Source of the DNA: Octopus sinensis
Lineage: Eukaryota
Direction of reading: 5' to 3'
DNA: 64,000 nt
Assembly (NCBI RefSeq): GCF_006345805.1
Contig: NC_043020.1
Coordinates: 4,650,001 to 4,714,000 of the forward strand
The first letter of the stretch is position 1. Each line of letters begins with the position of its first letter. Under the pieces are notes generated by a model. The model was not told the DNA's origin. It saw only the letters and a list, made by a program, of their open reading frames with translations, and did no database searches. Below are positions 15,689 through 46,085 of this stretch, piece by piece. The position numbers were made by a program, and so were the translations under genes.

Positions 15689-15775
15689 CTACAATTACAT
15701 AAATGTGTTGAGTGGGAAGTTATATATCTTTATATATATAAAACTGAGAATGTGTGTCTGTCTGTCTGTGTGTTT

Positions 15776-16419: not shown

Positions 16420-16558
16420 GCGTGTCGGAAATTTACCCACGTGTGTTGTTATCTGTGATTAGACGTTGAAATTTTGTTGTGTAAAGTGATTAATATCGCG
16501 CAAGGCATTTGCCTCCACGTTTGGAAACCTTCTGAAGAGGTGAATTGACCCTCTAGTC

Positions 16559-17946
16559 ATGGCGACTTACGCGGGGGTCACGGAAAAATAATAATGATTC
16601 GGCAATAATCGTGAAGGATGTTTTCTTTGAGAAAAGTAAAATCAAAGAATATGAAAAGCTATTCAAAGGGAGGGTGATAGCGTGAAGCTAATCCCCCCCG
16701 CGAAAGCAAAGGAGGACAAGGAAAACAAAACTGTAACGTATAGAACCCAGGACAAAAGTACAAAGAAACTGGCAAGAGTGGAGATAGCAGAGATCGAAAA
16801 ATGTCTGGGAGACATAATGGATAAATCGACCTACGTGAGTAGAGGAAAAAATTTGGTACGGTGGAGGTGAGATGTGCAACGGAAGAAATTGCAGCCTCAC
16901 TGGCTACCACTGTTCTAAGAGCGGAAACATTTATAATGTGGCCCTCATACAAGGGAAGAAGAGGGGTCCGGGTTAAAATCCCGAATATACCCCCAGAAGT
17001 AAAAACAGAATGGCTGGCAACAGCTATTCTAGGAGCAGCAGAAGAGGAAGTGGAGGTGGAATCCTTTAAGGAGTCCAACGCAGTAAATTGGAGAGGATAT
17101 GGGGTAGAACTGTGTTTGATGGCACAAAAGAGGACATTGAAAGGTTCCCCTATAGAATAGAAATCGAAGACGAGAAAACCCTCAGTGTAATTGTAGAGGG
17201 AAGAAAGCCAAACTGCTACTTGTGCGGGACAAGGGGGCACATTAAAAAAGAGTGCCCGTTATATGAATTCATGGCGGAGTATGAGAAGGAAAATGAGAAA
17301 AGAAGAATACGGGAAATGAAAAAGAAAACATAGAAAAGGAGACAAACAACAAGAGAAAGGAAATAATAAGTCAACGAAGGAAAAAGAAATAAAAGAAAAG
17401 AAAGAAATAGAACCAAAACAGAGTCAGGAAAAGAAAAGAAAAAGAAACAAAACAGGAAAAAACAAGAGAGAGAACAGAACCAAACGAAAAGAAAAGACGG
17501 CACACAAAAAGAAAAAGAAAAGAACATAAACACGAGAGAAAGAGAGAACAGACAAAGAACCAAAAGACAAGAGAAGGAAGAAGAAAGAAAAGAAGGCAAA
17601 AAGAGAGAAGAGAGAAACAAAGAGAGGAGAACAAGGAAGAAATAAGCCCGAAAAGAAAACGAGAGAAAACGTAGGACGGAAACAAGATTACTACAAGTTA
17701 ATAACCTTCCATTTCAGCCCCGAAATGAAGGAATTGACATGTAGTATGGAGGGACATGTGTGGGTCAACAGGATGACTGATCAGTGGCAGGAGACTGCTC
17801 TGATCCCCGAAGAAAGAGTCGCTGAGTTCCTCAGAGCAGCTGGAGAGAGTGTAATTTTTTACACGGGTGTTCGAGTGAAAGAGCGGCTGCCTGAGGGCTC
17901 AGTGATTGACTTTAGAGACTTGAAAAGTATTATGGAATACGTGTGA
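16559..17946 (+). CDS. Type A ORF1, copy A1 (frameshifted as assembled)
   Basis: MATY start, CYLCGTRGHIKKEC knuckle, C-terminal ...DLKSIMEYV*. Confidence 0.7.
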
Positions 17947-18329
17947 GATTGTGAGAGGAGAGAGAAGAAAGAAGAGAAAAAGAAAAAAAAAAATGTGAAC
18001 TATAGGTGACGAAAATGTAACCTCTCGATTCCGGGGATCGAGTGGGCATTTGCATCTCATTGTAAATATTCTTTCATTTGTCATTTTTATTTTTATTTTT
18101 TCCCTTCTTGTCATTTCGCTTTCTTATTTTAAGTTCCCCGATTGTATTGTCCCCTCTATGTTCGCCCCTTGTGGGTAGTAATAAAATCAGCGTGTCGGAA
18201 ATTTACCCACGTGTGTTGTTATCTGTGATTAGACGTTGAAATTTTGTTGTGTAAAGTGATTAATATCGCGCAAGGCATTTGCCTCCACGTTTGGAAACCT
18301 TCTGAAGAAGGTGAATTGACCCTCTAGTC

Positions 18330-19720
18330 ATGGCGACTTACGGGGGTCACGGGAAAGAATAATAATGATTCGGCAATAATCGTGAAGGATGTTTTCTTTG
18401 AGAAAAGTAAAATCAAAGAATATGAAAAGCTATTCAAAAGGGAGGGTGATAGCGTGAAGCTAATCCCCCCCGCGAAAGCAAAGGAGGACAAGGAAAACAA
18501 AACTGTAACGTATAGAACCCAGGACAAAAGTACAAAGAAACTGGCAAGAGTGGAGATAGCAGAGATCGAAAAATGTCTGGGAGACATAATGGATAAATCG
18601 ACCTACGTGAGTAGAGGAAAAAATTTGGTACGGTGGAGGTGAGATGTGCAACGGAAGAAATTGCAGCCTCACTGGCTACCACTGTTCTAAGAGCGGAAAC
18701 ATTTATAATGTGGCCCTCATACAAGGGAAGAAGAGGGGTCCGGGTTAAAATCCCGAATATACCCCCAGAAGTAAAAACAGAATGGCTGGCAACAGCTATT
18801 CTAGAGCAGCAGAAGAGGAAGTGGAGGTGGAATCCTTTAAGGAGTCCAACGCAGTAAATTGGAGAGGATATGGGGTAGAACTGTGTTTGATGGCCACAAA
18901 AGAGACATTGAAAGGTTCCCCTATAGAATAGAAATCGAAGACGAGAAAACCCTCAGTGTAATTGTAGAGGGAAGAAAGCCAAACTGCTACTTGTGCGGGA
19001 CAAGGGGGCACATTAAAAAGAGTGCCCGTTATATGAATTCATGGCGGAGTATGAGAAGGAAAATGAAGAAAGAAGAATACGGGAAATGAAAAAGAAAACA
19101 TAGAAAAGGAGACAAAACAACAAGAGAAAGGAAATAATAAGTCAACGAAGGAAAAAGAAATAAAAGAAAAGAAAGAAATAGAACCAAACAGAGTCAGGAA
19201 AAGAAAAAGGAAAAGAAACAACAGGAAAAAAACAAGAGAGAGAACAGAACCAAACGAAAAGAAAAGACGGCACACAAAAAGAAAAAGAAAAGGAACATAA
19301 AACACGAGAGAAAGAGAGAACAGACAAAGAACCAAAAGACAAGAGAAGGAAGAAGAAAGAAAAGAAGGCAAAAAGAGAGAAAGAGAGAAACAAAGAGAGG
19401 AGAACAAGGAAGAAATAAGCCCGAAAAGAAAAACGAGAGAAAACGTAGGACGGAAACAAGATTACTACAAGTTAATAACCTTCCATTCCAGCCCCGAAAT
19501 GAAGGAATTGACATGTAGTATGGAGGGACATGTGTGGGTCAACAGGATGACTGATCAGTGGCAGGAGACTGCTCTGATCCCCGAAGAAAGAGTCGCTGAG
19601 TTCCTCAGAGCAGCTGGAGAGAGTGTAATTTTTTACACGGGTGTTCGAGTGAAAGAGCGGCTGCCTGAGGGCTCAGTGATTGACTTTAGAGACTTGAAAA
19701 GTATTATGGAATACGTGTGA
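18330..19720 (+). CDS. Type A ORF1, copy A2 (frameshifted as assembled)
   Basis: Same protein in pieces across frames. Confidence 0.7.
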
Positions 19721-20104
19721 GATTGTGAGAGGAGAGAGAAGAAAGAAGAGAAAAAAGAAAAAAAAAATTGTGAACTATAGGTGACGAAAATGTAACCTCT
19801 CGATTCCGGGGATCGAGTGGGCATTTGCATCTCATTGTAAATATTCTTTCATTTGTCATTTTTATTTTTATTTTTTCCCTTCTTGTCATTTCGCTTTCTT
19901 ATTTTAAGTTCCCCGATTGTATTGTCCCCTCTATGTTCGCCCCTTGTGGGTAGTAATAAAATCAGCGTGTCGGAAATTTACCCACGTGTGTTGTTATCTG
20001 TGATTAGACGTTGAAATTTTGTTGTGTAAAGTGATTAATATCGCGCAAGGCATTTGCCTCCACGTTTGGAAACCTTCTGAAGAAGGTGAATTGACCCTCT
20101 AGTC

Positions 20105-21489
20105 ATGGCGACTTACGCGGGGGTCACGGGAAAGAATAATAATGATTCGGCAATAATCGTGAAGGATGTTTTCTTTGAGAAAAGTAAAATCAAAGAATAT
20201 GAAAAGCTATTCAAAAGGGAGGGTGATAGCGTGAAGCTAATCCCCCCCGCGAAAGCAAAGGAGGACAAGGAAAACAAAACTGTAACGTATAGAACCCAGG
20301 ACAAAAGTACAAAGAAACTGGCAAGAGTGGAGATAGCAGAGATCGAAAAATGTCTGGGAGACATAATGGATAAATCGACCTACGTGAGTAGAGGAAAAAA
20401 TTTGGTACGGTGGAGGTGAGATGTGCAACGGAAGAAATTGCAGCCTCACTGGCTACCACTGTTCTAAGAGCGGAAACATTTATAATGTGGCCCTCATACA
20501 AGGGAAGAAGAGGGGTCCGGGTTAAAATCCCGAATATACCCCCAGAAGTAAAAACAGAATGGCTGGCAACAGCTATTCTAGGAGCAGCAGAAGAGGAAGT
20601 GGAGGTGGAATCCTTTAAGGAGTCCAACGCAGTAAATTGGAGAGGATATGGGGTAGAACTGTGTTTGATGGCCACAAAAGAGGACATTGAAAGGTTCCCC
20701 TATAGAATAGAAATCGAAGACGAGAAAACCCTCAGTGTAATTGTAGAGGGAAGAAAGCCAAACTGCTACTTGTGCGGGACAAGGGGGCACATTAAAAAGA
20801 GTGCCCGTTATATGAATTCATGGCGGAGTATGAGAAGGAAAATGAAGAAAAGAAGAATACGGAAATGAAAAAGAAAACATAGAAAAGGAGACAAAACAAC
20901 AAGAGAAGGAAAATAAGTCAACGAAGGAAAAAGAAATAAAAGAAAAGAAAGAATAGAACCAAAACAGAGTCAGGAAAAGAAAAAGGAAAAAGAAACAACA
21001 GGAAAAAAACAAGAGAGAAAGAACCAAACGAAAAGAAAAGACGGCACACAAAAAGAAAAAGAAAAGGAACATAAAACACGAGAGAAAGAGAGAACAGACA
21101 AAGAACCAAAAAGACAAGAGAAGGAAGAAGAAAGAAAAGAAGGCAAAAAGAGAGAAAGAGAGAAACAAAGAGAGAAACAAGGAAGAAATAAGCCCGAAAA
21201 GAAAACGAGAGAAAACGTAGGACGGAAACAAGATTACTACAAGTTAATAACCTTCCATTCCAGCCCCGAAATGAAGGAATTGACATGTAGTATGGAGGGA
21301 CATGTGTGGGTCAACAGGATGACTGATCAGTGGCAGGAGACTGCTCTGATCCCCGAAGAAGAGTCGCTGAGTTCCTCAGAGCAGCTGGAGAGAGTGTAAT
21401 TTTTTACACGGGTGTTCGAGTGAAAGAGCGGCTGCCTGAGGGCTCAGTGATTGACTTTAGAGACTTGAAAGTATTATGGAATACTGTGA
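20105..21489 (+). CDS. Type A ORF1, copy A3 (frameshifted as assembled)
   Basis: Same protein in pieces across frames. Confidence 0.7.
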
Positions 21490-21871
21490 GATTGTGAGAG
21501 GAGAGAGAAGAAAGAAGAGAAAAAAGAAAAAAAAATTGTGAACTATAGGTGACGAAAATGTAACCTCTCGATTCCGGGATCGAGTGGGCATTTGCATCTC
21601 ATTGTAAATATTCTTTCATTTGTCATTTTTATTTTTATTTTTTCCCTTCTTGTCATTTCGCTTTCTTATTTTAAGTTCCCCGATTGTATTGTCCCCTCTA
21701 TGTTCGCCCCTTGTGGGTAGTAATAAAATCAGCGTGTCGGAAATTTACCCACGTGTGTTGTTATCTGTGATTAGACGTTGAAATTTTGTTGTGTAAAGTG
21801 ATTAATATCGCGCAAGGCATTTGCCTCCACGTTTGGAAACCTTCTGAAGAAGGTGAATTGACCCTCTAGTC

Positions 21872-23262
21872 ATGGCGACTTACGCGGGGGTCACGGGAAA
21901 GAATAATAATGATTCGGCAATAATCGTGAAGGATGTTTTCTTTGAGAAAAGTAAAATCAAAGAATATGAAAAGCTATTCAAAAGGGAGGGTGATAGCGTG
22001 AAGCTAATCCCCCCCGCGAAAGCAAAGGAGGACAAGGAAAACAAAACTGTAACGTATAGAACCCAGGACAAAAGTACAAAGAAACTGGCAAGAGTGGAGA
22101 TAGCAGAGATCGAAAAATGTCTGGGAGACATAATGGATAAATCGACCTACGTGAGTAGAGGAAAAAAATTTGGTACGGTGGAGGTGAGATGTGCAACGGA
22201 AGAAATTGCAGCCTCACTGGCTACCACTGTTCTAAGAGCGGAAACATTTATAATGTGGCCCTCATACAAGGGAAGAAGAGGGGTCCGGGTTAAAATCCCG
22301 AATATACCCCCAGAAGTAAAAACAGAATGGCTGGCAACAGCTATTCTAGGAGCAGCAGAAGAGGAAGTGGAGGTGGAATCCTTTAAGGAGTCCAACGCAG
22401 TAAATTGGAGAGGATATGGGGTAGAACTGTGTTTGATGGCCACAAAAGAGGACATTGAAAGGTTCCCCTATAGAATAGAAATCGAAGACGAGAAAACCCT
22501 CAGTGTAATTGTAGAGGGAAGAAAGCCAAACTGCTACTTGTGCGGGACAAGGGGGCACATTAAAAAAGAGTGCCCGTTATATGAATTCATGGCGGAGTAT
22601 GAGAAGGAAATGAAGAAAAGAAGAATACGGGAAATGAAAAAGAAAACATAGAAAAGGAGACAAAACAACAAGAGAAAGGAAATAATAAGTCAACGAAGGA
22701 AAAAGAAATAAAAAAAGAAAGAAATAGAACCAAAACAGAGTCAGGAAAAGAAAAAGGAAAAAGAAACAACAGAAAAAAACAAGAGAGAGAACAGAACCAA
22801 ACGAAAAGAAAAGACGGGCACAAAAAGAAAAAGAAAAGGAACATAAAACACGAGAGAAAGAGAGAACAGACAAAGAACCAAAAAGACAAGAGAAGGAAGA
22901 AGAAAGAAAAGAAGGCAAAAAGAGAAAGAGAGAAACAAAGAGAGGAGAACAAGGAAGAAATAAGCCCGAAAAGAAAAACGAGAAACGTAGGACGGAAACA
23001 AGATTACTACAAGTTAATAACCTTCCATTCCAGCCCCGAAATGAAGGAATTGACATGTAGTATGGAGGGACATGTGTGGGTCAACAGGATGACTGATCAG
23101 TGGCAGGAGACTGCTCTGATCCCCGAAGAAAGAGTCGCTGAGTTCCTCAGAGCAGCTGGAGAGAGTGTAATTTTTTACACGGGTGTTCGAGTGAAAGAGC
23201 GGCTGCCTGAGGGCTCAGTGATTGACTTTAGAGACTTGAAAAGTATTATGGAATACGTGTGA
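21872..23262 (+). CDS. Type A ORF1, copy A4 (frameshifted as assembled)
   Basis: 259-aa N-terminal part intact through the CCHC knuckle. Confidence 0.7.
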
Positions 23263-23643
23263 GATTGTGAGAGAGAGAGAAGAAAGAAGAGAAAAAGAAA
23301 AAAAAATTGTGAACTATAGGTGACGAAAATGTAACCTCTCGATTCCGGGGATCGAGTGGGCATTTGCATCTCATTGTAAATATTCTTTCATTTGTCATTT
23401 TTATTTTTATTTTTTCCCTTCTTGTCATTTCGCTTTCTTATTTTAAGTTCCCCGATTGTATTGTCCCCTCTATGTTCGCCCCTTGTGGGTAGTAATAAAA
23501 TCAGCGTGTCGGAAATTTACCCACGTGTGTTGTTATCTGTGATTAGACGTTGAAATTTTGTTGTGTAAAGTGATTAATATCGCGCAAGGCATTTGCCTCC
23601 ACGTTTGGAAACCTTCTGAAGAAGGTGAATTGACCCTCTAGTC

Positions 23644-25041
23644 ATGGCGACTTACGCGGGGGTCACGGGAAAGAATAATAATGATTCGGCAATAATCGTG
23701 AAGGATGTTTTCTTTGAGAAAAGTAAATCAAAATATGAAAAGCTATTCAAAAGGGAGGGTGATAGCGTGAAGCTAATCCCCCCCGCGAAAGCAAAGGAGG
23801 ACAAGGAAAACAAAACTGTAACGTATAGAACCCAGGACAAAAGTACAAAGAAACTGGCAAGAGTGGAGATAGCAGAGATCGAAAAATGTCTGGGAGACAT
23901 AATGGATAAATCGACCTACGTGAGTAGAGGAAAAAAATTGGTACGGTGGAGGTGAGATGTGCAACGGAAGAAATTGCAGCCTCACTGGCTACCACTGTTC
24001 TAAGAGCGGAAACATTTATAATGTGGCCCTCATACAAGGGAAGAAGAGGGGTCCGGGTTAAAATCCCGAATATACCCCCAGAAGTAAAACAGAATGGCTG
24101 GCAACAGCTATTCTAGGAGCAGCAGAAGAGGAAGTGGAGGTGGAATCCTTTAAGGAGTCCAACGCAGTAAATTGGAGAGGATATGGGGTAGAACTGTGTT
24201 TGATGGCCACAAAAGAGGACATTGAAAGGTTCCCCTATAGAATAGAAATCGAAGACGAGAAAACCCTCAGTGTAATTGTAGAGGGAAGAAAGCCAAACTG
24301 CTACTTGTGCGGGACAAGGGGGCACATTAAAAAAAGTGCCCGTTATATGAATTCATGGCGGAGTATGAGAGGAAAATGAAGAAAAGAAGAATAGGGAATG
24401 AAAAAAAAAAAAAAGAAAACATAGAAAAGAGACAAAACAACAAGAGAAAGGAAATAATAAGTCAACGAAGGAAAAAGAAATAAAAGAAAAGAAAGAAATA
24501 GAACCAAAACAGAGTCAGGAAAAGAAAAAGGAAAAAGAAACAACAGGAAAAAAACAAGAGAGAGAACAGAACCAAACGAAAAGAAAAGACGGCACACAAA
24601 AAGAAAAAGAAAAGGAACATAAAACACGAGAGAAAGAGAGAACAGACAAAGAACCAAAAAGACAAGAGAAGGAAGAAGAAAGAAAAGAAGGCAAAAAGAG
24701 AGAAAGAGAGAAACAAAGAGAGGAGAACAAGGAAGAAATAAGCCCGAAAAGAAAAACGAGAGAAAACGTAGGACGGAAACAAGATTACTACAAGTTAATA
24801 ACCTTCCATTCCAGCCCCGAAATGAAGGAATTGACATGTAGTATGGAGGGACATGTGTGGGTCAACAGGATGACTGATCAGTGGCAGGAGACTGCTCTGA
24901 TCCCCGAAGAAAGAGTCGCTGAGTTCCTCAGAGCAGCTGGAGAGAGTAATTTTTTACACGGGTGTTCGAGTGAAAGAGCGGCTGCCTGAGGGCTCAGTGA
25001 TTGACTTTAGAGACTTGAAAAGTATTATGGAATACGTGTGA
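23644..25041 (+). CDS. Type A ORF1, copy A5 (frameshifted as assembled)
   Basis: Same protein in pieces across frames. Confidence 0.7.
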
Positions 25042-25425
25042 GATTGTGAGAGGAGAGAGAAGAAAGAAGAGAAAAAAGAAAAAAAAAATTGTGAACTATA
25101 GGTGACGAAAATGTAACCTCTCGATTCCGGGGATCGAGTGGGCATTTGCATCTCATTGTAAATATTCTTTCATTTGTCATTTTTATTTTTATTTTTTCCC
25201 TTCTTGTCATTTCGCTTTCTTATTTTAAGTTCCCCGATTGTATTGTCCCCTCTATGTTCGCCCCTTGTGGGTAGTAATAAAATCAGCGTGTCGGAAATTT
25301 ACCCACGTGTGTTGTTATCTGTGATTAGACGTTGAAATTTTGTTGTGTAAAGTGATTAATATCGCGCAAGGCATTTGCCTCCACGTTTGGAAACCTTCTG
25401 AAGAAGGTGAATTGACCCTCTAGTC

Positions 25426-26821
25426 ATGGCGACTTACGCGGGGGTCACGGGAAAGAATAATAATGATTCGGCAATAATCGTGAAGGATGTTTTCTTTGAG
25501 AAAAGTAAAATCAAAGAATATGAAAAGCTATTCAAAAGGGAGGGTGATAGCGTGAAGCTAATCCCCCCCGCGAAAGCAAAGGAGGACAAGAAAACAAAAC
25601 TGTAACGTATAGAACCCAGGACAAAAGTACAAAGAAACTGGCAAGAGTGGAGATAGCAGAGATCGAAAAATGTCTGGGAGACATAATGGATAAATCGACC
25701 TACGTGAGTAGAGGAAAAAAATTTGGTACGGTGGAGGTGAGATGTGCAACGGAAGAAATTGCAGCCTCACTGGCTACCACTGTTCTAAGAGCGGAAACAT
25801 TTATAATGTGGCCCTCATACAAGGGAAGAAGAGGGGTCCGGGTTAAAATCCCGAATATACCCCCAGAAGTAAAAACAGAATGGCTGGCAACAGCTATTCT
25901 AGGAGCAGCAGAAGAGGAAGTGGAGGTGGAATCCTTTAAGGAGTCCAACGCAGTAAATTGGAGAGGATATGGGGTAGAACTGTGTTTGATGGCCACAAAA
26001 GAGGACATTGAAAGGTTCCCCTATAGAATAGAAATCGAAGACGAGAAAACCCTCAGTGTAATTGTAGAGGGAAGAAAGCCAAACTGCTACTTGTGCGGGA
26101 CAAGGGGGCACATTAAAAAAGAGTGCCCGTTATATGAATTCATGGCGGAGTATGAGAAGGAAAATGAAGAAAAGAAGAATACGGGAAATGAAAAAGAAAA
26201 CATAGAAAAGGAGACAAAACAACAAGAGAAAGGAAATAATAAGTCAACGAAGGAAAAAGAAATAAAAGAAAAGAAAGAAATAGAACCAAAACAGAGTCAG
26301 GAAAAGAAAAAGGAAAAAGAAACAACAGGAAAAAAACAAGAGAGAGAACAGAACCAAACGAAAAGAAAAGACGGCACACAAAAAGAAAAAGAAAAGGAAC
26401 ATAAAACACGAGAGAAAGAGAGAACAGACAAAGAACCAAAAGACAAGAGAAGGAAGAAAAGAAAAGAAGGCAAAAAGAGAGAAAGAGAGAAACAAAGAGA
26501 GGAGAACAAGGAAGAAATAAGCCCGAAAAGAAAAACGAGAGAAAACGTAGGACGGAAACAAGATTACTACAAGTTAATAACCTTCCATTCCACCCCGAAA
26601 TGAAGGAATTGACATGTAGTATGGAGGGACATGTGTGGGTCAACAGGATGACTGATCAGTGGCAGGAGACTGCTCTGATCCCCGAAGAAAGAGTCGCTGA
26701 GTTCCTCAGAGCAGCTGGAGAGAGTGTAATTTTTTACACGGGTGTTCGAGTGAAAGAGCGGCTGCCTGAGGGCTCAGTGATTGACTTTAGAGACTTGAAA
26801 AGTATTATGGAATACGTGTGA
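25426..26821 (+). CDS. Type A ORF1, copy A6 (frameshifted as assembled)
   Basis: 318-aa central part intact. Confidence 0.7.
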
Positions 26822-27204
26822 GATTGTGAGAGGAGAGAGAAGAAAGAAGAGAAAAAAGAAAAAAAAAATTGTGAACTATAGGTGACGAAAATGTAACCTC
26901 TCGATTCCGGGGATCGAGTGGGCATTTGCATCTCATTGTAAATATTCTTTCATTGTCATTTTTATTTTTATTTTTTCCCTTCTTGTCATTTCGCTTTCTT
27001 ATTTTAAGTTCCCCGATTGTATTGTCCCCTCTATGTTCGCCCCTTGTGGGTAGTAATAAAATCAGCGTGTCGGAAATTTACCCACGTGTGTTGTTATCTG
27101 TGATTAGACGTTGAAATTTTGTTGTGTAAAGTGATTAATATCGCGCAAGGCATTTGCCTCCACGTTTGGAAACCTTCTGAAGAAGGTGAATTGACCCTCT
27201 AGTC

Positions 27205-28603: not shown

Positions 28604-28988
28604 GATTGTGAGAGGAGAGAGAAGAAAGAAGAGAAAAAAGAAAAAAAAAAATTGTGAACTATAGGTGACGAAAATGTAACCTCTCGATTCCGGGGATCGA
28701 GTGGGCATTTGCATCTCATTGTAAATATTCTTTCATTTGTCATTTTTATTTTTATTTTTTCCCTTCTTGTCATTTCGCTTTCTTATTTTAAGTTCCCCGA
28801 TTGTATTGTCCCCTCTATGTTCGCCCCTTGTGGGTAGTAATAAAATCAGCGTGTCGGAAATTTACCCACGTGTGTTGTTATCTGTGATTAGACGTTGAAA
28901 TTTTGTTGTGTAAAGTGATTAATATCGCGCAAGGCATTTGCCTCCACGTTTGGAAACCTTCTGAAGAAGGTGAATTGACCCTCTAGTC

Positions 28989-30381: not shown

Positions 30382-30624
30382 GATTGTGAGAGGAGAGAGA
30401 AGAAAGAAGAAAAAAAAAAAAAAAAATTGTGAACTATAGGTGACGAAAATGTAACCTCTCGATTCCGGGGATCGAGTGGGCATTTGCATCTCATTGTAAA
30501 TATTCTTTCATTTGTCATTTTTATTTTTATTTTTTCCCTTCTTGTCATTTCGCTTTCTTATTTTAAGTTCCCCGATTGTATTGTCCCCTCTATGTTCGCC
30601 CCTTGTGGGTAGTAATAAAATCAG

Positions 30625-33905: not shown

Positions 33906-34128
33906 CGTGTCGGAAATCATTTTTTTTGCGTTATTAGTAAGTTGATATATTTTTGCTCTCGTACTGTTGTCTCTGTTATTATATACTGTTGGTCTACCTT
34001 TTGTCTATTGTTGTCTAACTGACGAAGTCAGCCTTCGCGCGAGGACTTCGCGTTGGTGTTCCCCCTCAGTGGGGGAAAACTAAAATTAATTTGGATTTAC
34101 CAAAGGCTTGTTAAGCCATTTGTTCAAG

Positions 34129-35519: not shown

Positions 35520-35527
35520 GGTAAGTA

Positions 35528-38500
35528 ATGGATTACATTTATGTTGGTTGTTTGAATGTGCGCGGCCTGGGAGCAGGCTGGAAGCAAGGTCGCTTCCTGC
35601 ATGATATCAGGTCGCGTAATTTAGATGTTATTGTTGCTACAGAAACCCGGTTAGAGGGGCCAAGAGGTCTACTCCCGCTGTTTGACGGCTACGAGAGTTT
35701 TTTCTCTCCTGGCAGTCCTACAGGCGGGGTGGGGTGTTGGTCCTATTAAAAAGAAACCGGGTTTCTGAGAAAAAGTTAATTTTTGCAGATCCAGAAGGTA
35801 GGCTGGTCGTTATGGATTTGACGTTCAGTAATGGTAAAGTTATCAGACTGGTTGCAATTTACGCACCCAACCATACAGGGCAAAGTGATTATTTTCGTGA
35901 ACTAGAAAACTTTCTTGGTACTTCGCATTCATTAGTGGTGCTAGGAGACTTTAACACAATTTGCAAAGCGGATGTAGATTGTGTTGGCTCGCGTCCAGAT
36001 AGAAAAGGCAACAGTGGCTTCATGGAACTGCTAAGCCGCTTTGAGCTAGCAGATCCTTATAGGCTGGAATTTCCGAACGCTCCATTGTGGACATGGTCAA
36101 ACAGCGACGGATCTTCCAGGTCATATTTAGATAGAATACTAATTAGAAAAGTAGACAGTAAAATAGCTAAGTGTCCACAGTTTTACCCGATCAGCTACAG
36201 TGATCATAAAATGGTCACTTGTAAGCTTGACATAGATAAGGTTAAAAATAGAGGATCCGGTTACTGGAAACTTAATACGTCCCTTTTGGCGATTAAGGAG
36301 TACAAAGACCGGATTAGGAATATAATTCAGAGGGCACTATCTGGTACCATCATTAATAACAAATGGTGGTACGCCCTCAAACGAGCCATCAAGTTTGAGT
36401 CTATTAGATATAACATAGGAGTAGTGGCTAGAGAGGCTAGAAGGGAAACTACTCTAGTTAAGGAATTAGAGGAAGCCATGAAAACTGGCTCTGCGGCTCA
36501 GGTGACGTCCAAGAGACTGGTGTTAAACCAGCACCTCGAGGCCAAACACATGGGCTGCATTGTCAGGGCTAGGATCCGCGCAATGGGTTGTGAAGGAATC
36601 AACGCCGTGAGATGGGCCCGAGTGGTGGAAGCTCGGCATGGTAACGATGCCACGATTCGATCTTTGACGAACCAACAAGGTGAGTTGATAAACGAACCCG
36701 AGGAGATGTGTGAGGCCTTTCAGGAGCACTTCGCTCAGCTTTTCGGTGAGTGCGGCGGACTGGATAGGAGGAGGGCCTTTACGGACCTACTCGACGGGCT
36801 GCCGCGCTTATCGGGGCGAGATGCGGAGGGCTGTGAAGGGCCAATCACGCCTGAGGAGGTGGTTGAGGCAATGGCGGACTGCGGCGCGGGCAAGGCGCCG
36901 GGTTTGGATGGTCTACCCTATGAGTTATATAAGAGTATGCCAGACTTGTTCGGGCACCTACTGGCGGAGGTCTATGCGAACTGGCAGCAGAACGGGCTTA
37001 TACCCAGATCTGTGCGCCGGGGAGTAGTGACTCGCGTCAGAAAGGACCCGAGCAAGGGGGAGTGCATTGATAATTTCAGGCCCATCACTCTGCTAAACAC
37101 AGAGTTGAAGATTTTGGCCAAAGTGTTATCGAAAAGATTGGCGCGTGTCGCGGATGGTCTGATCGGAGAGGCACAGACATGTGCCGTTCCGGGCAGATCC
37201 ATTCAGGATAATCTCCATCTAATGCGGTACACTATAGAGGGGTTTAATAGTGATTCTGGCAAGGGTGGGGCACTGGTCCATTTAGACCAATCTAAAGCTT
37301 TTGATAGGGTCGACCATCGTTACCTGGTATCTGCCCTGGCACGGTTCGGGCTGAGCCTTGGCTTCCTCAGGTGGATTATCCAAATTTATGATAACATCGA
37401 CTCGGTAGTTCGGGTGAACGGCTACTTGTCGAAGCCGTTCAAAATCAAACGCTCGGTTCGTCAAGGGTGTCCGCTCTCCCCGCTTTTGTACGTGATGGCT
37501 CTTGAGCCATTACTGCGAAAACCGAGCGGCATCCCGAGACAGCCAGGTAATGGAAAATCAGTGTCAGCGTACGCGGATGACATCACCATCATCGTAACCG
37601 AAATGGACCACCTATGTAAAGTAGGCAAGGCCATAGAGGTTTACGAGACGGTGACAGGAGCAAAAGTTAATCGCGAAAAGTCAGTCGGCTTGCAACTCGG
37701 CACCTGGAGAGGCAAGTCGATGCCTCCTGACAGCGTCGTGGGACGTTGGACGGAGGGTCCGATTAAACTGCTAGGGGTTTGGTTCGGTCCAGACTTCCAA
37801 ATAGAGAAGAATTTGGGCGAGGTATCGAGCAGGGTGGCTGCAGTAGCCAAGACCTGGTCTTGGCGGTGGCTATCCCTGAAAGGGAGGGCGGAGGTGGCGA
37901 ATGTGTTTATCGCATCGGTTATCACCTACCGCCTCTCCGTCGTTCCTTGCCCTGATTCGTGGTCGATCAAGTTGGAAAGACAGCTCTTCTACTTCTTGTG
38001 GAAGGGCGGGAAACCACTTGTGAAACGCTCTACTTGCTGTCAACAACCGTTAAAGGGTGGGCTAGGGATGCCTTGGCTGATGATGCGCAGACATGCGCTG
38101 AGGTTAAGACATCTGTGGCTCTACCTGGATGGTGAACGGGTGTGGTCTTCGCTAGCAAAACTGATGTTTCCCAAGTTCACTAATTTCGGTGGATGGGAAA
38201 CCTGGCTGAATCGTAGATCGAAACTTGGTACTTGGTACACGGAGTGTCGCAAGGCTCTCCTGCTATTCCGTCGCTCGGGCAACGCCTGCGGTGGGGGTTC
38301 CACCACATTCTTCTATAGAGGGTTGGTAGAGGCGGAATGTGAAGATACCTTGGGGGAAACCCTAGGTCTCTACGATAATCAGCTGGCCAGTCTGTTCCGA
38401 CGTACGTTCGAGCCGAGGACACTGGACAACTTCCAGAAGTCTCTGGCATGGCAATGCTACAGAGGAGCTCTACCTGTTCGGGATAAACTCGCAAGGCACG

Positions 38501-38920
38501 GTGGCCAAGACAGTCCGATATGTCCAAGATGCGGGCGGGATAGGGAAACCGTCCCGCACGCTATTGTTCATTGTCCGGACGTGTCTGAGGTGTGGGTTTA
38601 TGCCGAACACCTGTTGTCAGGTACACGAAGAGTACAGCTGTCGACTGAGTCGATTACAAAAATTGACCCACCGGATTTCCTCGTGAATGAAGGTAAGTTT
38701 CGTTTTCTCGTTGTAGTAGCAATTGCGAAAGAGGTGATATGGAAGACGAGAATGAAAGGTTTACAGTCAGGCAAGTTCATCTCCGGCTCTGGTTTGATGA
38801 ATATTTCATCTTTCACCTGAAAAGGAAGATAGGTTGGAGAGAATATGCCTGACTAGGAGAGTGTATGAAGAACGATGGAAGGATGTAGCACGAAAGTTGC
38901 GAGTGAAAGATACAACATAA
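35528..38920 (+). CDS. ORF2 of element C: APE endonuclease, reverse transcriptase, C-terminal CCHC
   Basis: CLNVRGL, GDFN, YLDRI, SDH; KAFDRVDH, RQGCPLSP, YADD; CPRC...HAIVHC; single-base shifts near 35730 and 38800. Confidence 0.9.
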
Positions 38921-39167
38921 ATGTAATACCAAGCGCAACCAAAAGTATCAGTGGGGAGGCGGGGCTCGTGGGGTCCGAGCTAAACCCGCACCCACTCCAC
39001 CCGTAATGTCTTCCGGTCTGTCCCATCATTCGATTTCTGTCCATTTATTGTAATTCATGAAAATTTTTAAATTCGATTTATTGTAAAAACCCATTCGTGT
39101 GTCTGACCCCATCATCAGATTGTATTGTCCCATCTTTGTTCGCCCCTTGTGGGTAATAATAAAACAA

Positions 39168-40950
39168 CGTGTCGGAAATCTACGTGTGTTGTTATCTGTG
39201 ACTAGACGGTGAAATTTTTTCTGTGTAAATTGATTTAATATCGCGCGAGGCGTTTGCCTCCACGTGTGGAAACCTTCCGAAGAAGGTGAATTGACCCTCT
39301 AGTCATGGCGACTTACGCGGGGGTCACCGGGAAAAATAATGATTCGTCGATAATCATAAAGGATGTTTTCTTTGAGAAGGATAAACTCAAAGAATATGAA
39401 AAGCTCTTCAAAAGGGAGGGTGATAGCGTGAAGCTAATCGCCCCCGCGAAAGCAAAAGAGGACAAAGAAAGCAAGACAGTGACATACAGAACCCAAGACA
39501 AAAATACAAAGAAACTGGCAAGAGTGGAGATAGTCGAAATTGAAAAATGTCTGGGAGACATAATGGGGAAAACAACCTACGTGAGTAGAGGCAAGAAATT
39601 TGGTACGGTGGAGGTGAGATGTGCAACGGAAGAAATTGCAGCCTCACTGGCTACCACTGTACTAAGAGCCGAAAAATTTACAATGTGGCCCTCATACAAG
39701 GGAAGAAGAGGGGTCCGGGTTAAAATCCCGAATATACCCCCAGAAGTGAAAACAGAATGGCTGGCAACAGCTATTCTAGGAGCAGCAGAAGAGGAAGTGG
39801 AGGTGGAATCCTTTAAGGAGTCCAACGCGGTAAACTGGAGAGGATATGGGGTAGAACTGTGTTTGATGGCCACAAAAGAGGACATTGAAAGGTTCCCCTA
39901 CAGAATTGAAATTGAAGATGAAAAAACCCTCAGTGTAATTGTAGAGGGAAGAAAACCAAACTGTTACTTGTGTGGGACAAGGGGGCACATTAAAAAAGAG
40001 TGCCCGTTATACGAATTCGTAGCGGAGTGCGAGCAGGAACTTGAAGAAAAGAAGAATACGGTAAATGAAAAAGAAAACATAGAAAAGGAAACAAAACAAC
40101 AAGAGAAAGGAAATAATAAGTCAATGAAGGAAAAAGAAATAAAAGAAAAGAAAGAAATAGAACCAAAACAGAGTCAGGAAAAAAAAAAGGAAAAAGAAAC
40201 AATAGGAAAAAAACAAGAGAGAGATCAGAATCAAACGAAAAGAAAAGACGGCACACAAAAGGAAAAAGAAAAGGAACATAAAACACGAGAGAAAGAGAGA
40301 ACAGAGAAACAACCAAAAAGACAAGAGAAGGAAGGAGAAAGAAAAGAAGGCAAAAAGAGAGAAAGAGAGAAACAAAGAGAGGAGAACAAGGAAGAAATAA
40401 GCCTGAAAAGAAAAATGAAGGAAAACGTAGGACGGAAACAAGATTACTACTACTACAAGTTAATAACCTTCCATTTCTGCCCTGAAATGAAAGACTTGAC
40501 ATGGAATACGGAGGGACATATATGGGTCGACAGGAATACCGATCAGTGGCAGGAGACTGCTCTAATCCCCGAAGAAAGAGTCGCTGAGTTCCTCAGAGCT
40601 GCCGGAGAGAGTGTAATATTTCACACGAAGGTTCGAGTGAGAGAGCGGCCGCCTGAGGGCTCAGTGATTGACTTTAGAGAATTGAAAGCTATTATGGAAT
40701 ATGTATAGAATTGTGAGAAGAAGGAGAAGAAAGAAGAGAAAAAAGAAAATTTTGTGAAATATATGTGACGAAAATGTAACCTCTTGATTCCGGGGATCGA
40801 GTGGACATTTACATCTCATTGTAAATATTCTTTCATATGTCATTTTTTTACTTTTATTTTTTCCTTTTCTTGTCATTCGCTTCCTTATTTTAAGTTCCCC
40901 GATTGTATTGTCCCATCTATGTTCGCCCCTTGTGGGTAGTAATAAAATCA
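39168..40950 (+). mobile_element. ORF1-only element A' (diverged type A)
   Basis: Same layout as the A units; shared 3' tail. Confidence 0.92.
39305..40708 (+). CDS. Intact 467-aa ORF1 (N-terminal domain, CCHC zinc knuckle, K/E/R-rich linker, C-terminal domain)
   Basis: Uninterrupted ORF; CX2CX4HX4C knuckle CYLCGTRGHIKKEC. Confidence 0.9.
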   Translation: MATYAGVTGKNNDSSIIIKDVFFEKDKLKEYEKLFKREGDSVKLIAPAKAKEDKESKTVTYRTQDKNTKKLARVEIVEIEKCLGDIMGKTTYVSRGKKFGTVEVRCATEEIAASLATTVLRAEKFTMWPSYKGRRGVRVKIPNIPPEVKTEWLATAILGAAEEEVEVESFKESNAVNWRGYGVELCLMATKEDIERFPYRIEIEDEKTLSVIVEGRKPNCYLCGTRGHIKKECPLYEFVAECEQELEEKKNTVNEKENIEKETKQQEKGNNKSMKEKEIKEKKEIEPKQSQEKKKEKETIGKKQERDQNQTKRKDGTQKEKEKEHKTREKERTEKQPKRQEKEGERKEGKKREREKQREENKEEISLKRKMKENVGRKQDYYYYKLITFHFCPEMKDLTWNTEGHIWVDRNTDQWQETALIPEERVAEFLRAAGESVIFHTKVRVRERPPEGSVIDFRELKAIMEYV

Positions 40951-41175
40951 CATGGCGGAAAGCAAATCGCGTGTGTAGTGAGTTATTATATTTTGCCGTC
41001 GTATATATTTTCTCCGTTATATTCTACTGTGTGTCTAACTGTCTTTGTTTATTGTTGTACAACTGTTGAAGTCAGCCTTCGTGCGAGGGATTCGTGTTGG
41101 TGTTCAGCCCTCCGTGGGGGAAAAACTATCATTATTGCGGCTTGTGCCAAGGGCTTGTTAAGCCAGTTGTCGGAG

Positions 41176-42466
41176 ATGGACTCCCCCATCTCATATCCAC
41201 CTGTGTCTAGTGATGCAGGATCACCGGCGGTGTCGCCAAAGAAAAAAGATATTCCAGCACCAGCGAAAAAATTTTCAGAAGTAGCTGGTAAGAAAATTAA
41301 AAAATTTAACGTTGAAGACCTAAAGAAATATGCGGACTGTGTGACAAAAAGGGCACGGAAGTAACAGTGGTTACAAACGCCCAAAAACAGGAAGAAATTG
41401 CAAAAAGAAGAATAATTTATAAGACCTTCAATATAACAAGCAAATCGATACAAAAAATAGAGGAAAAAAAATCGAAAATTGCTTAAAGCCGATAATGGAT
41501 AAGATCACATACATCAATAGAGGAAAGAAATACGGCACAGTGGAGGTGAGATTCACAACAGAGGAGGTAGCCAAAAAGCTATCTATGGAACCAATAAAAG
41601 TGGAGAATATTGTTCTCCTCCCCCTGTATAGAGGAAAAAGAACATCAAAGATCACTATGAATAATATTCCGCCAGAAGCGGATGCCGAATGTCTGGTGGC
41701 AGCAGTTATGGTACGCCTGGAGGAAAAAATAAACATCCTCCAGGCCACAGTAGAGGAGGAAGAATTCTGGAAGGGGCAGCGGATAATAATAGCCATCTAG
41801 GCAGAAATACAAACCCTGGAAGAAATTCCAGAGACTCTAAAAATAAGCGAAGAAGATAGAGTCACAGTCTTCGTAGAGGGCAGAAAGCCGAGGTGCTTCG
41901 GCTGCGGTAAGAAAGGGCATGTAAGGGCAGAATGCCAACCCAAACCGCAGGAAGCAGCTCAGCCAGGTGGAAAAGCAGAAGAGGTGTCACCAGAAGCAGC
42001 GCCGGGTGGCCCAGAAGGGACGGCTGAAGGTGTGGAGGTGACAGAGGCAGCAGAACCAGTGGCGGAGGAAAAAAGAGCGAGGAAACGAAAAATGAGGAGG
42101 GGTGGTCAAAAATCACTAAAAAAAAAAAGAAAAACTGAAACCACCCCTCCCAAAGTGAACCAAAAGAAGAAAAGAGAGTCGTTGAACTCATTTATGGCCG
42201 TTAAGGCCTCGAACAATAGACTCGGTAATGTGTTGGCAGCTATGGCCAAAGTGGAAAAAATAGGGAAAAAAAATGACTATATATTGTACAGAATAGGCCG
42301 GAAGGATTACGGACGGATAAAGTCCGAATTTTTTCATGACGTGATTCCTCTCAGAATGGATATAACATCTCCATATATATTCGAGGGCCTGCGTCAGACT
42401 CCCCCACGAGGCCCAGAAAAAGAGACAAACAAAGAAGAAAAAGAAAAAACCGAACCACTGATATAA
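41176..42466 (+). CDS. ORF1 of element D (disrupted as assembled)
   Basis: MDSPISY start, RGKKYGTVEVRF, CFGCGKKGHVRAEC, ends ...KTEPLI*. Confidence 0.75.
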
Positions 42467-42474
42467 GATAAGTA

Positions 42475-45400
42475 ATGGATTACATTTATGTTGGTTGTTT
42501 AAATGTGCGCGGCCTGGGAGCAGGCTGGAAGCAAGGTCGCTTCCTTAATGATATCAGGTCGCGTAATTTAGATGTTATTGTTGCTACAGAAACCCGGTTA
42601 GAGGGGCCAAGAGGTCTACTCCCGCTGTTTGACGGCTACGAGAGTTTTTTCTCTCCTGGCAGTCCTACAGGCGGGGGTGGGGTGTTGGTCCTATTAAAAA
42701 GAAACCGGGTTTCTGAGAAAAAGTTAATTTTTGCAGATCCAGAAGGTAGGCTGGTCGTCATGGATTTGACGTTCAGTAATGGTAAAGTTATCAGACTGGT
42801 TGCAATTTACGCACCCAACCATAAAGGGCAAAGTGATTATTTTCGAGAACTGGAAAACTTTCTTGGTACTTCGCATTCATTAGTTGTGCTAGGAGACTTT
42901 AACACAATTTGCAAAGCGGATGTAGATTGTGTTGGCTCGCGTCCAGATAGAAAAGGTAACAGTAGCTTCATGGAACTGCTAAGCCGCTTTGAGCTAGCAG
43001 ATCCTTATAGGTTGGAATTTCCGAACGCTCCATTGTGGACATGGTCAAACAGCGACGGATCTTCCAGGTCATATTTAGATAGGATACTAATTAGAAAAGT
43101 AGACAGAAAAATAGCTAAGTGTCCACAGTTTTACCTGGTCAGCTACAGTGATCATAAAATGGTCACCTGTAAGCTTGACATAGATAAGGTTAAAAATAGA
43201 GGATCCGGTTACTGGAAACTTAATACGTCCCTTTTGGCGATTAAGGAGTACAAAGACCGGATTAGGACTATAAGTCAGAGGGCACTATCTGGTACCATCA
43301 TCAATAACAAATGGTGGTACGCCCTCAAACGAGCCATCAAATTCGAGTCAATTAGATATAGCATAGGAGTTGTGGCTAGAGAGGCTAGGAGGGAATCTAC
43401 TCTAGTTAAGGAATTAGAGGAAGCCTTGAAAACTGGCTCTGCGGCTCAGGTGACGTCCAAGAGACTGGTGTTAAACCAGCACCTCGAGGCCAAACACATG
43501 GGCTGCATTGTCAGGGCTAGGATCCGCGCAATGGGTTGTGAAGGAATCAACGCCGTGAGATGGGCCCGAGTGGTGGAAGCACAGCATGGTAACGATGCCA
43601 CGATTCGATCTTTGACGAACCAACAAGGTGAGTTGATAAACGAGCCCGAGGAGATGTGTGAGGCCTTTCACGAGCACTTCGCTCAGCTTTTCGGTGAGTG
43701 CGGCGGACTGGATAGGAGGAGGGCCTTTACGGACCTCCTCGACGGGCTGCCGCGCTTATCGGGGCAAGATGCGGAGGACTGTGAAGGGCCAATCACGCCT
43801 GGGGAGGTGGTTGAGGCGATGGCGGACTGCGGCGCGGGCAAGGCGCCGGGTTTGGATGGTCTACCCTATGAGTTATATAAGAGTATGCCAGACTTGTTCG
43901 GGCACCTACTGGCGGAGGTCTATGCGAACTGGCAGCAGAACGGGCTCATACCCAGATCTGTGCGCCGGGGAGTAGTGACACTCGTCAGAAAGGACCCGAG
44001 CAAGGGGGAGTGCATTGATAATTTCAGGCCCATCACTCTGCTAAACACAGAATTGAAGATTTTGGCCAAAGTGTTATCGAAAAGATTGGCGCGTGTCGCG
44101 GATGGTCTGATCGGAGAGGCACAGACATGTGCCGTTCCTGGCAGAACCATTCAGCATAATCTCCATCTTATGCGGTACACTATAGAGGGGTTTAATAGCG
44201 ATTCTGGCAGGGGTGGGGCACTGGTCCATTTAGACCAATCTAAAGCATTCGATAGGGTCGACCATCGATACCTGGTATCTGCCCTGGCACAGTTCGGGCT
44301 GAGCCTTGGCTTCCTCAGGTGGATTATCCAAATTTATGACAACATCGACTCGGTAGTTCGGGTGAACGGCTTCTTATCGAAGCCGTTCAACATCAAGCGC
44401 TCGGTTCGTCAAGTGTGTCCGCTCTCCCCGCTTTTGTACGTGATGGCTCTTGAGCCATTACTGCGAAAACTGAGCGGCATCCCGAGACAGCCAGGTAGTG
44501 GAAAATCGGTGTCAGCGTACGCGGATGACATCACCATCATCGTAACCGAAATGGACCACCTACGTAAAGTAGGCAAGGCCATAGAGGTTTACGAGACGGT
44601 GACAGGAGCAAAAGTTAATCGCGAAAAGTCAGTCGGCTTGCAACTCGGCACCTGGAGAGGCAAGTCGATGCCTCCTGACAGCGTCGTGGGACGTTGGACG
44701 GAGGGTCCGATTAAGTTGCTAGGGGTTTGGTTCGGTCCAGACTCCAAATAGAGAAGAATTGGGGCGAGGTATCGAGCAGGGTGGCTGCAGTAACCAAGAC
44801 CTGGTCTTGGCGGTGGCTATCCTGAAAGGGAGGGCGGAGGTAGCCAATGTGTTTATCGCATCGGTTATCACCTACCGCCTTTCCGTCGTTCCTTGCCCTG
44901 ATTCGTGGTTGATCAAGTTGGAAAGACAGCGCTTCTACTTCTTGTGGAAGGGCGGGAAACCACTTGTGAAACGCTCTACTTGCTGTCAACAACCGTTAAA
45001 GGGTGGGCTAGGGATGCCTTGGCTGATGATGCGCAGACATGCGCTAAGGTTAAGACATCTGTGGCTCTACCTGGATGGTGAACGGGTGTGGTCCCCGCTA
45101 GCAAAACTGATGTTTCCCAAGTTCACTAGTTTCGGTGGATGGGAAACCTGGCTGAATCGTAGATCGAAACTAGGCACATGGTACACGGAGTGTCGCAAGG
45201 CTCTCCTGCTATTCCGTCGCTCGGGCAACGCCTGCGGTGGGGGTTCCACCACATTCTTCTATAGAGGGTTGGTAGAGGTGGAATGTGAAGATATCTTGGG
45301 GGAAGCCCTAGGTCTATACGATAATCAGCTGGCCAGTCTGTTCCGACGTACGTTTGAGCCGAAGACACTGGACAACTTCCAGAAGTCTCTGGCATGGCAA

Positions 45401-45868
45401 TGCTACAGAGGAGCTCTACCTGTTCGGGATAAACTCGCAAGGCACGGTGGCCAAGACAGTCCGATATGTCCAAGATGCGAGCGGGATAGGGAAACCGTCC
45501 CGCACGCTATTGTTCATTGTTCGGACGTGTCTGAGGTGTGGGTTTATGCCGAACAGCTGTTGTCAAGCACACGAAGAGTACAGCTGTCGACTGAGTCGAT
45601 TACAAAAATTGACCCACCGGATTTCCTCGCGAAAGAAGGTAAGTTTTGTTTTCTCGTTGTAGTAGCAATTGCGAAAGAGGTGATATGGAAGACGAGAATG
45701 AAAGGTTTACAGTCAGGCAAGTTCATCTCCGGCCCTGGTTTGATGAATTATTTCATCTTTCACCTGAAAAGGAAGATAGGGCTGGAGAGAATATGCCTGG
45801 CTAAGAGAGTGTATGAAGAACGATGGAAAGATGTAGCACGAAAGTTGCGAGTGAATGATACCACATAA
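42475..45868 (+). CDS. ORF2 of element D: APE endonuclease, RT, CCHC (frameshift near 44750)
   Basis: 758-aa and 369-aa ORFs; YADD; RQVCPLSP variant of the conserved QG motif. Confidence 0.88.
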
Positions 45869-46085
45869 ATGTAAAACTAAACGAAACTAAAAGTATCAGT
45901 GGGGAGGCGGGGCTCGTGGGGTCCGAGCTAAACCCGCTCCCACTCTATCCGTAATGTCTTCCGGTCTGTTCTCCATTCGATTTTTTCTATTTTGTAATTT
46001 TCTGTAAAACCCATTCGTGTATCTGACCCCACATCAGATTGTATTGTCCCATCTATGTTCGCCCCTTGTGGGTAATAATAAAACA

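Follow-up and report, generated by a model that had tools for sequence, protein, structure and literature searches.

A 64-kb stretch of Octopus sinensis DNA from NC_043020.1 (here the window, whose positions serve as coordinates unless a comparison locus is named) contains a head-to-tail array of 13 retrotransposon units, comprising two autonomous long interspersed elements (LINEs), C and D, and members of two families, A and B, that encode only the first open reading frame (ORF1). Our analysis suggests that this array probably arose by many separate insertions of one site-specific group of retrotransposons that lack long terminal repeats (non-LTR elements) into a single site of a Helitron. 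A reading of the window from its letters alone (the original prediction) had proposed a bipartite, self-extending system in which several ORF1-only lineages use a C/D-type reverse transcriptase (RT) and repeatedly land at one site. That core proposal appears largely right, the mechanism being R1-type re-use of a regenerated target. In the literature, of which our coverage was incomplete, we found no description of such arrays or of cephalopod ORF1-only LINEs.

Self-BLAST and motif mapping of the conserved ends place the 13 units on the plus strand in the order A x8, B1, B2, C, A', D from left to right, as had been proposed, and move the limits of the array, formerly given as 16420 to 46085, to 16417 (or 16418) and 46083, followed by a terminal 16-nt target copy that reaches ~46100. 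Self-comparison shows a period of ~1775 bp from 16418 to ~31956, more diverged units beyond, and the two ~5.2-kb elements, C and D, which are mutually 91 to 92% identical; between 16 and 46 kb the plus strand is strongly purine rich (GC skew ~+0.27, AT skew ~+0.3 to 0.4). Units A1 to A8 (16417 to 30620; tails ending at 18186, 19961, 21728, 23500, 25282, 27061, 28845, and 30620) are ORF1-only members of subfamily A-I, 1767 to 1784 bp long, each with the head (T)CAGCGTGTCGGAAAT and each with an interrupted ORF1. B1 (30621 to 32514, 1894 bp), ORF1-only and ~71% identical to A in DNA, keeps a CCHC knuckle in a frameshifted ORF1, and B2 (32515 to 33901, 1387 bp), 94% identical to B1, has an internal deletion and a 290-aa ORF (32731 to 33603) that lacks the CCHC region. 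A' (39165 to 40947, 1783 bp), from an older A subfamily, is ORF1-only with an intact ORF1 of 467 aa (39305 to 40708).

Of the autonomous elements, C (33902 to 39164, 5263 bp) retains ORF1 remnants at ~34355 to 35154 and an ORF2 of 1028 aa (35734 to 38820) with APE, RT, and zf-RVT domains, a frameshift having cost it the N terminus, and D (40948 to 46083, 5136 bp) has a stop in ORF1 and an ORF2 that a single frameshift splits into 758 and 369 aa (42475 to 44751 and 44759 to 45868). Homologous but interrupted ORF1 sequence is found in A1 to A8, B1, C, and D. The content first read from the window thus stands in most respects: C and D also encode an APE-RT ORF2, each broken once, all units share a tail with a ~45-nt 3' box, and eleven units are ORF1-only in content, except that B2 is without the knuckle and that every ORF1 in the window other than that of A' is broken by frameshifts or stops. 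The units had also been described as joined without spacer DNA; they do run head to tail, but a target copy of 13 to 16 nt separates every tail from the next body.

Comparison with other loci shows that the window array is one of many. We examined ten loci (L001 to L010; genes plus 10-kb flanks, ~260 kb in total) of the O. vulgaris assembly GCA_951406725.2, chosen through a protein search with the A' ORF1 whose matches were only to sequences labeled Octopus vulgaris, on several chromosome-sized records. Eight of the ten (L001 to L004 and L006 to L009), on six chromosome records, have the same architecture, giving nine arrays with that of the window. The shared plan is a host left arm, one to eight or more ORF1-only units, a C/D-type element, and a host right arm, the last being seen wherever the right end lay inside the fetched locus (L001 and L008 did not show it). 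The arrays are internal, with host and unique DNA on both sides, on chromosome records of 80 to 226 Mb. Because eight more arrays exist elsewhere, the general form is independent of any single assembly.

This recurrence makes it extremely unlikely that the array is an assembly artefact in which dispersed copies were mis-assembled into a tandem run, for the same architecture and flanks appear eight more times in an independent chromosome-level assembly, the junctions lead into unique flanks on both sides, and private substitutions distinguish the units. What speaks for an artefact is confined to the window, where the A units have 5 to 13 private indel columns each, against 0 to 3 in the units of GCA_951406725.2; such indels leave the exact number of A units in the window insecure. 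These A units also have in common three or four substitutions absent from the other arrays, and the window probably derives from a different, noisier assembly or individual than GCA_951406725.2.

All nine arrays occupy one position of a ~1.2-kb non-coding repeat, making insertion sequence specific, and the array splits this host into a left arm of ~700 bp and a right arm of ~500 bp. The left arm of the window (15727 to 16416, plus strand) begins after a flanking A with TCTTTATATATATAAAACTGAG, includes a 148-bp sequence repeated twice in tandem (15774 to 16066, by TRF), and ends ...GAGAAAAAAGGAGATTCGA(A) directly before the first unit; the right arm (46084 to 46557, plus strand) closes with the hairpin GACCCGGCAACGACGGGTC and then TTTAATGCTAG, before a flanking T. 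The left arm is 92 to 97% conserved in L001, L002, L004, and L006 to L009, and the termini, TCTTTATA... after A and ...GACCCGGCAACGACGGGTCTTTAATGCTAG before T, each occur in seven loci. Most host copies lie within (TA)n, but L003 and L008 have flanks other than TA, from which the ends of the host can be placed.

The host therefore begins with 5'-TC, carries a 6-bp GC-rich hairpin ~10 nt before a 3'-CTAG, and is inserted between A and T; no terminal inverted repeats, target-site duplication (TSD), or ORF were found, nor a Rep/helicase, for want of which it is non-autonomous. A 5'-TC, a 3'-CTRR, a GC-rich hairpin ~10 nt from the 3' end, insertion between A and T, and the absence of terminal inverted repeats and TSDs define Helitrons, and on these sequence features the host is classed as a non-autonomous Helitron. 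A reading of the host as a terminal-inverted-repeat transposon was rejected, given that it has neither such repeats nor an ORF. The single internal locus of the original prediction thus gives way to a specific site in a Helitron family that is spread over many chromosomes.

The heads of the units record how this site was used. In the window they are 13 to 16 nt long, variants of CA(A)CATGGAGGAAA(GCA), and they lie between every tail and the next body and once more past the last tail, so that n units are accompanied by n + 1 target copies. The head of D, CACATGGCGGAAAGCA, is a 16-nt TSD copy, and the rightmost copy, CAACATGGAGGAAAGCA (46084 to 46100, plus strand), is unaltered: at the tabulated junctions the copy beside the right arm is identical in five arrays, those of the window, L002, L003, L004, and L007. 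From the hosts in L006 and L009 ~300 bp are missing, the usual target among them; in this deletion variant the left arm is joined to right-arm position ~290. There the heads are CAATTCCAGTCT(GTTATA), an exact match to the local right flank, and insertion again lies 5 to 6 nt past the left arm. Because the heads in the variant host equal the local flank, head sequence tracks the target and not the element. TSD length is 12 to 18 nt at the Helitron site and 12 to 19 nt overall, and staggered cuts by an L1-type endonuclease are expected to give TSDs of such variable length. Taken together, these comparisons allow the heads to be treated as demonstrated target-site duplications, and the empty target, as reconstructed, would read ...TTTGAA, a boundary, and then CA(A)CATGGAGGAAAGCA CCTTCG...

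Related families show a similar pattern elsewhere. At 8600 to 12285 of L005, two ORF1-type units of a sister family, which has the same tail, stand head to tail in the head of a short interspersed element (SINE), in an array that has no autonomous unit. The 19-nt sequence CAGAAACGTyAGCACGCCG occurs three times around these two units and a single time at 20606, 8 kb distant, where a copy of this repeat has no insertion; it gives the longest of the TSDs noted above. In L010 (~750 to 14800; OX597818.1, between two hemocyanin genes), yet another target holds an array of a third related family, which also ends in this tail box; there the repeated sequence is a TSD-like CATCGATACTC and an APE-RT element ~80% identical to C/D sits in mid-array, not at the right end.

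That the arrays were assembled by repeated landing at one site, as first proposed, is supported by their common host position and by those units that most closely resemble a unit of another array. Among the 33 A units compared, L1.3 is 99.83% identical to L8.1 (98.4% within its array), L1.8 is 99.37% identical to L2.1 (98.5% within), and L1.4 is 98.4% identical to L7.4 (97.5% within). The host and its rightmost LINE also have separate histories. For L002 and L007 the LINEs are 99.0% and the hosts 94% identical; for D of the window and its counterpart in L004 the figures are 90.9% and 96.7%; and for L006 against the others they are 87 to 89% and 95 to 99%. Because these divergences are incongruent, the autonomous elements must have arrived separately in Helitron copies that already existed. 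A composite transposon, in which a Helitron caught a LINE once and the composite spread so that the common site reflects common descent, is consistent with the Helitron termini of the host and with the same site and right-arm autonomous element in all arrays; it is very unlikely, however, given that divergence of the rightmost LINE fails to follow that of the host in either direction, that insertions at the corresponding place of the variant host come with another TSD, and that sister families behave alike at unrelated targets. Co-amplification of Helitron and LINE was rejected on the same incongruence.

We also considered single-event concatemers, in which the C/D RT would begin on its own RNA and then jump to the 3' ends of A or B RNAs, or copy read-through RNA of a donor array, and lay down a whole block at once. 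Such an event would account for the invariable place of the autonomous unit at the 3' (right) end, for the precise junctions free of poly(A), and for the near absence of 5' truncation. It is nonetheless quite improbable, as a target-derived duplication stands between all units and takes a different sequence in the variant host, near-identical C-type elements have different A neighbors (L001/L003, 99.5%; L002/L007, 99.0%), and the subfamily gradient described below implies insertions spread in time. Block copying of whole arrays by read-through RNA was ruled out by the same mismatch of neighbors. Units at matching positions in different arrays were also, for the most part, seen to differ in identity, which tells against such concatemers.

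The order of subfamilies within the arrays bears on how they grew. Judged by 48 sites that distinguish A-I from A-II, each array begins on the left with A-I, passes through block-wise mosaics, and finishes on the right with A-II or A'; the full series is present in L001, L003, and L007, and the window and L008 agree with the order. Along every array the index from A-I to A-II changes monotonically (permutation p ~5e-5, an approximate value because the class definitions used some of the same units). Identity between arrays is 97.1% for A', which lies further right, and 98.9% for A-I, and in the window D, which looks older, stands to the right of C. Together with the variant host, which points to the left arm as the part that is recognized, these observations make it likely that the arrays grow at their left (5') end.

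Our preferred model of separate insertions can then be stated as a cycle. C/D members would supply an L1-type ORF2 together with a CCHC ORF1, and A and B only their own ORF1, with the ~45-nt tail box as the likely handle by which the C/D RT copies them in trans. Insertion would proceed by target-primed reverse transcription at a point 5 to 6 nt beyond the end of the left arm (...AAGAAGA, N5-6, and then CA...), and staggered cuts duplicate 12 to 18 nt of target each time. Recognition would depend on the left arm, as the deletion-variant host suggests, so that the left TSD copy could still be targeted and the inner ones no longer. Because only the left copy still adjoins the left arm, each new element would land at the 5' (left) end, and the array would grow leftward as a stack with its oldest unit rightmost. 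In the window the order of arrival would have been D, A', C, B2, B1, and then A8 to A1.

In L004, the leftmost unit (8590 to 10265) belongs to a further family, E, and has its 5' end against the left arm without a TSD copy, a configuration that would end growth of that array. The same locus includes a unit (12041 to 13679) with an A-type 5' end of ~140 bp on a B-type body, which looks like a template-switch chimera.

Several observations sit less well with serial insertion and left-end growth. The 6-nt core of the head varies much more than would be expected of a plain TSD, and its variants are common to neighboring units of different families. No empty host Helitron was present in the ~260 kb of fetched loci, so that the canonical TSD is reconstructed and not observed. 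Family B, used as outgroup, gave an ambiguous polarity for A (12 changes private to A', and a root of 4 versus 3), and several individual junctions fit either direction of growth, which is argued indirectly. The neighbor of the right arm is autonomous in seven of the seven arrays with a visible right end, an arrangement with a chance probability of ~8e-5 at the 40:10 ratio of ORF1-only to autonomous units, and one that the model leaves unexplained. The tail hairpin, a 4-bp stem, has essentially no compensatory changes and no covariation, and mobilization of A and B in trans is argued from the shared tail. Finally, A2 to A8 are identical at all 148 informative sites and in their heads, which unequal exchange fits equally well.

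This last point belongs to a broader alternative, satellite-type amplification, in which one or a few insertions were followed mainly by unequal crossing-over or tandem duplication of unit plus TSD. Adjacent units are often mutually closest, with near-identical runs in L1.5-7, L3.5-7, and L8.2-3 in addition to A2 to A8, and unequal exchange is known to enlarge dimers of transposable elements (PMC5932611). As an account of the arrays as a whole it is improbable, since up to four families keep a set order, the monotonic subfamily gradient recurs in five arrays, the heads of adjacent units differ in L003 and L007, and units have private differences and closest relatives in other arrays. Higher-order repeats were not seen in the arrays. 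The near-identical runs may stem from a single master that gave rise to bursts or from local unequal exchange, and enlargement of the A x8 block, and of that block alone, by unequal exchange is a real possibility, if one we hold at somewhat under even chances.

A speculative extension of the insertion model concerns how the target is chosen. The AATAAA at the end of the tail, together with the GU-rich start of the next unit, might cause transcripts to end inside the duplicated target, and the RNA 3' end might then pair with the nicked target, which would account for the missing poly(A) tails. Pairing of the RNA 3' end with the nicked target has been reported for R1Bm. Under such guidance only the rightmost unit would read into unaltered target and right arm, and so seed naive Helitrons; inner units would read into array-specific heads and home back to existing arrays. 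Homing of this kind would therefore yield autonomous founders and would explain the hypervariability of the head core too. We nonetheless regard a partly RNA-guided choice of target, through pairing of a transcript 3' extension with the nick, as rather unlikely.

The A and B families appear to be lineages in their own right. The A' ORF1 has an N-terminal domain, a CCHC knuckle at aa 219 to 234 (one zf-CCHC in Pfam), a stretch rich in K and E, and a C-terminal domain. Across its N-terminal domain and knuckle it is 31 to 39% identical to the C/D ORF1 protein, and it is 48 to 68% identical to that of B; by self-BLAST, similarity of A to C/D in DNA is confined to the first ~30 and last ~50 nt. At 1.4 to 1.9 kb, A and B units have no room for an RT. 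The full 467-aa ORF is kept in only two of 30 A copies (A' of the window and unit 5 of L001), most others having one or two frameshifts. The ratio of nonsynonymous to synonymous substitution rates between A subfamilies is 0.20 to 0.35, and 0.15 in the N-terminal and CCHC part, which indicates that the A-type ORF1 is under purifying selection. These ratios and the low identity to the C/D ORF1 argue that the A lineage has been long-lived and that its propagating copies depend on an ORF1 protein of their own.

The proposal of distinct ORF1-only lineages beside autonomous C/D is thus upheld by separate ORF1s, selection, and one tail. Had A and B been simple deletion derivatives, mostly dispersed copies might have been expected, and every A or B copy retrieved lies inside an array at the Helitron site. 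From the common tail and common target it would appear that A and B use the C/D RT in trans. Structural searches added little: a PDB sequence search with ORF1 gave weak CCHC matches only, and an AlphaFold2 model of the N-terminal 240 aa of the A' ORF1, built on a 9-row alignment, had a mean pLDDT of 44.7 and was unusable.

The tail that the units share consists of conserved sequence, a 4-bp GCCC/GGGT hairpin, and AATAAA, and its last part reads GCCCCTTGTGGGTA(A/G)TAATAAAA. A longer form, ...TTGTATTGTCCC(A/C)TCTATGTTCGCCCCTTGTGGGTA(A/G)TAATAAAA, ends every unit without poly(A). AATAAA falls within the final 12 nt of 47 of 49 tails, and the G+T fraction at +15 to +44 after the tail is 0.66, against a background of 0.47. 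An Rfam scan gave nothing at the gathering threshold over the whole window and nothing meaningful at E<=1 in 39000 to 46400; a ribozyme or structured RNA at the unit heads, a candidate we had considered, was dismissed on these empty scans. No tRNA genes were found.

A ~270-bp tRNA-like SINE (GGCGGCGAGCTGGCAGAAACGTTAGCACGCCGGGCGAAATGCTTAGCGG...) carries the same 3' tail box as the LINEs. Copies lie on the minus strand of L002 (~19925 to 20152 and ~20187 to 20371) and L006 (~2260 to 2490) and in L007 (5436 to 5590). Those in L002 are two in tandem, one of them 5'-truncated, with three copies of a 22- to 31-nt TSD, which shows that double insertion also takes place where the site is not specific. 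Because of the common tail box, the RT of the LINEs probably serves the SINE too, as a client of a third kind.

The autonomous partner can be placed with more confidence. Pfam finds Exo_endo_phos, RVT_1, and zf-RVT in the ORF2 of C, of D, and of the L002 copy, and the L002 ORF2 aligns to residues 4 to 866 of human L1 ORF2p, spanning APE and RT (E=9e-65), with far weaker matches to R2 proteins; a CCHC motif is aligned in the C/D ORF1. On this evidence ORF2 is securely assigned to the L1 superfamily (L1/Tx1 group), within which the Tx1-like affinity given in the original prediction is a candidate placement. Its best named database match, at 49%, is from Argonauta hians, the matches carrying no clade names, and a protein search for O. 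vulgaris returned no ORF2 close to the C/D family (>58% identity). For O. vulgaris, a repeat annotation from 2026 names 13 "L1-Tx1" families; it describes no arrays or ORF1-only elements and cannot be linked to the present family (PMC13282606).

C is 98.2 to 98.4% identical to the copies in L002 and L007. The L002 element (11082 to 16297) is C-type with an uninterrupted ORF1 (340 codons) and ORF2 (1130 codons), and, being apparently intact and unannotated, it is a candidate active master. The autonomous copies of L006 and L009 are 97% identical in the 3' half and 81.5% in the 5' half, a difference that marks them as modular or recombinant elements.

Beyond the array, the window holds unrelated transposon remains, among them minus-strand RT ORFs, one of 1043 aa and others related to it, at 2048 to 5179 and 49541 to 53021 (1855 to 3358 is ~66% identical to 49200 to 50703), another APE and RT LINE at 59310 to 61521 (minus strand), and a transposase-like fragment at 6713 to 7177 (plus strand). 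Upstream of the host Helitron is a direct repeat of ~1.1 kb (10767 to 11874 and 12778 to 13875, 72% identity).

These arrays represent a mixed retrotransposon community outside telomeres and ribosomal DNA (rDNA), in which one RT element, several protein-coding "half" elements, and a SINE share one tail and the LINE families also have a common target. Parallel growth at one end would yield replicated, ordered records of subfamily succession and recombination, which are rare for LINEs. The system offers a natural case of a programmable-looking, sequence-specific site for L1-type integration, with the Helitron as a safe harbor, and the arrays account for runs of "uncharacterised" annotated octopus genes at 1.78-kb spacing. 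Should the RNA-guided reading prove true, the arrays would be self-extending "nurseries" in which ORF1-only lineages evolve, with a readable, dated record.

Among known systems, the closest in process is the tandem array of R1, reportedly described by Roiha et al. in 1981. In Drosophila melanogaster, R1 units are separated by 33-nt rDNA duplications, for which a double-insertion model has been proposed (McGurk & Barbash 2018, PMC5932611). Both cases involve an APE-type site-specific element that re-inserts at a target regenerated by its own TSD, with later unequal exchange possible, and the octopus units likewise stand in one orientation with a target copy between every two and at both ends. 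Unlike R1, the octopus elements use as target a dispersed Helitron at many loci instead of rDNA; many arrays grow in parallel; the arrays are mixed, with at least four families of autonomous and ORF1-only elements ordered by age; the TSD is 12 to 18 nt rather than 33 nt; and the elements belong to the L1 superfamily, not to R1.

Non-autonomous LINEs that encode only ORF1 are known as HAL1 in the L1 clade, HeT-A in the Jockey clade, and Ag-Sponge in the CR1 clade (PMC5786205). As in those elements, A and B have an ORF1 homologue under selection, no RT, and the 3' end of an autonomous partner; they differ in being site specific, in forming arrays with that partner, in the coexistence of several families, and in an ORF1 only 31 to 39% identical to the partner's, from which we consider A and B to be long-lived separate lineages. 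Mixed head-to-tail arrays of a Gag-only element and RT partners in one orientation recall HeT-A, TART, and TAHRE, whose arrays in Drosophila lie at chromosome ends, to which they attach with neither endonuclease nor TSD, and show poly(A)-to-5' junctions and varying 5' truncation. The HeT-A/TART likeness drawn in the original prediction extends to composition and not to such end attachment, as the octopus loci are internal, with an APE domain, TSDs, no poly(A) at junctions, and nearly all units full length, and growth would occur beside recognized DNA at the 5' end of the array and not onto a chromosome end.

Tx1L, which sits in Tx1D of Xenopus laevis, is likewise an APE LINE with a CCHC ORF1 at one site inside another transposon, with composites seen; the octopus host is instead a Helitron, and the likeness is one of features, not of clade placement. 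The Tx1 clade has been named as target specific (PMC4640811). To our knowledge, neither mixed arrays of several units nor ORF1-only partners have been described for it. With stringent-type LINE/SINE pairs the system shares a single ~45-nt tail box, here on autonomous, ORF1-only, and SINE elements, and departs from them in that the partners include protein-coding elements and that sister families target a SINE head. Working like an R1-type double-insertion array combined with a HAL1/HeT-A-type partner, the octopus arrays would represent a process already known in kind, though one that is uncommonly rich and orderly here.

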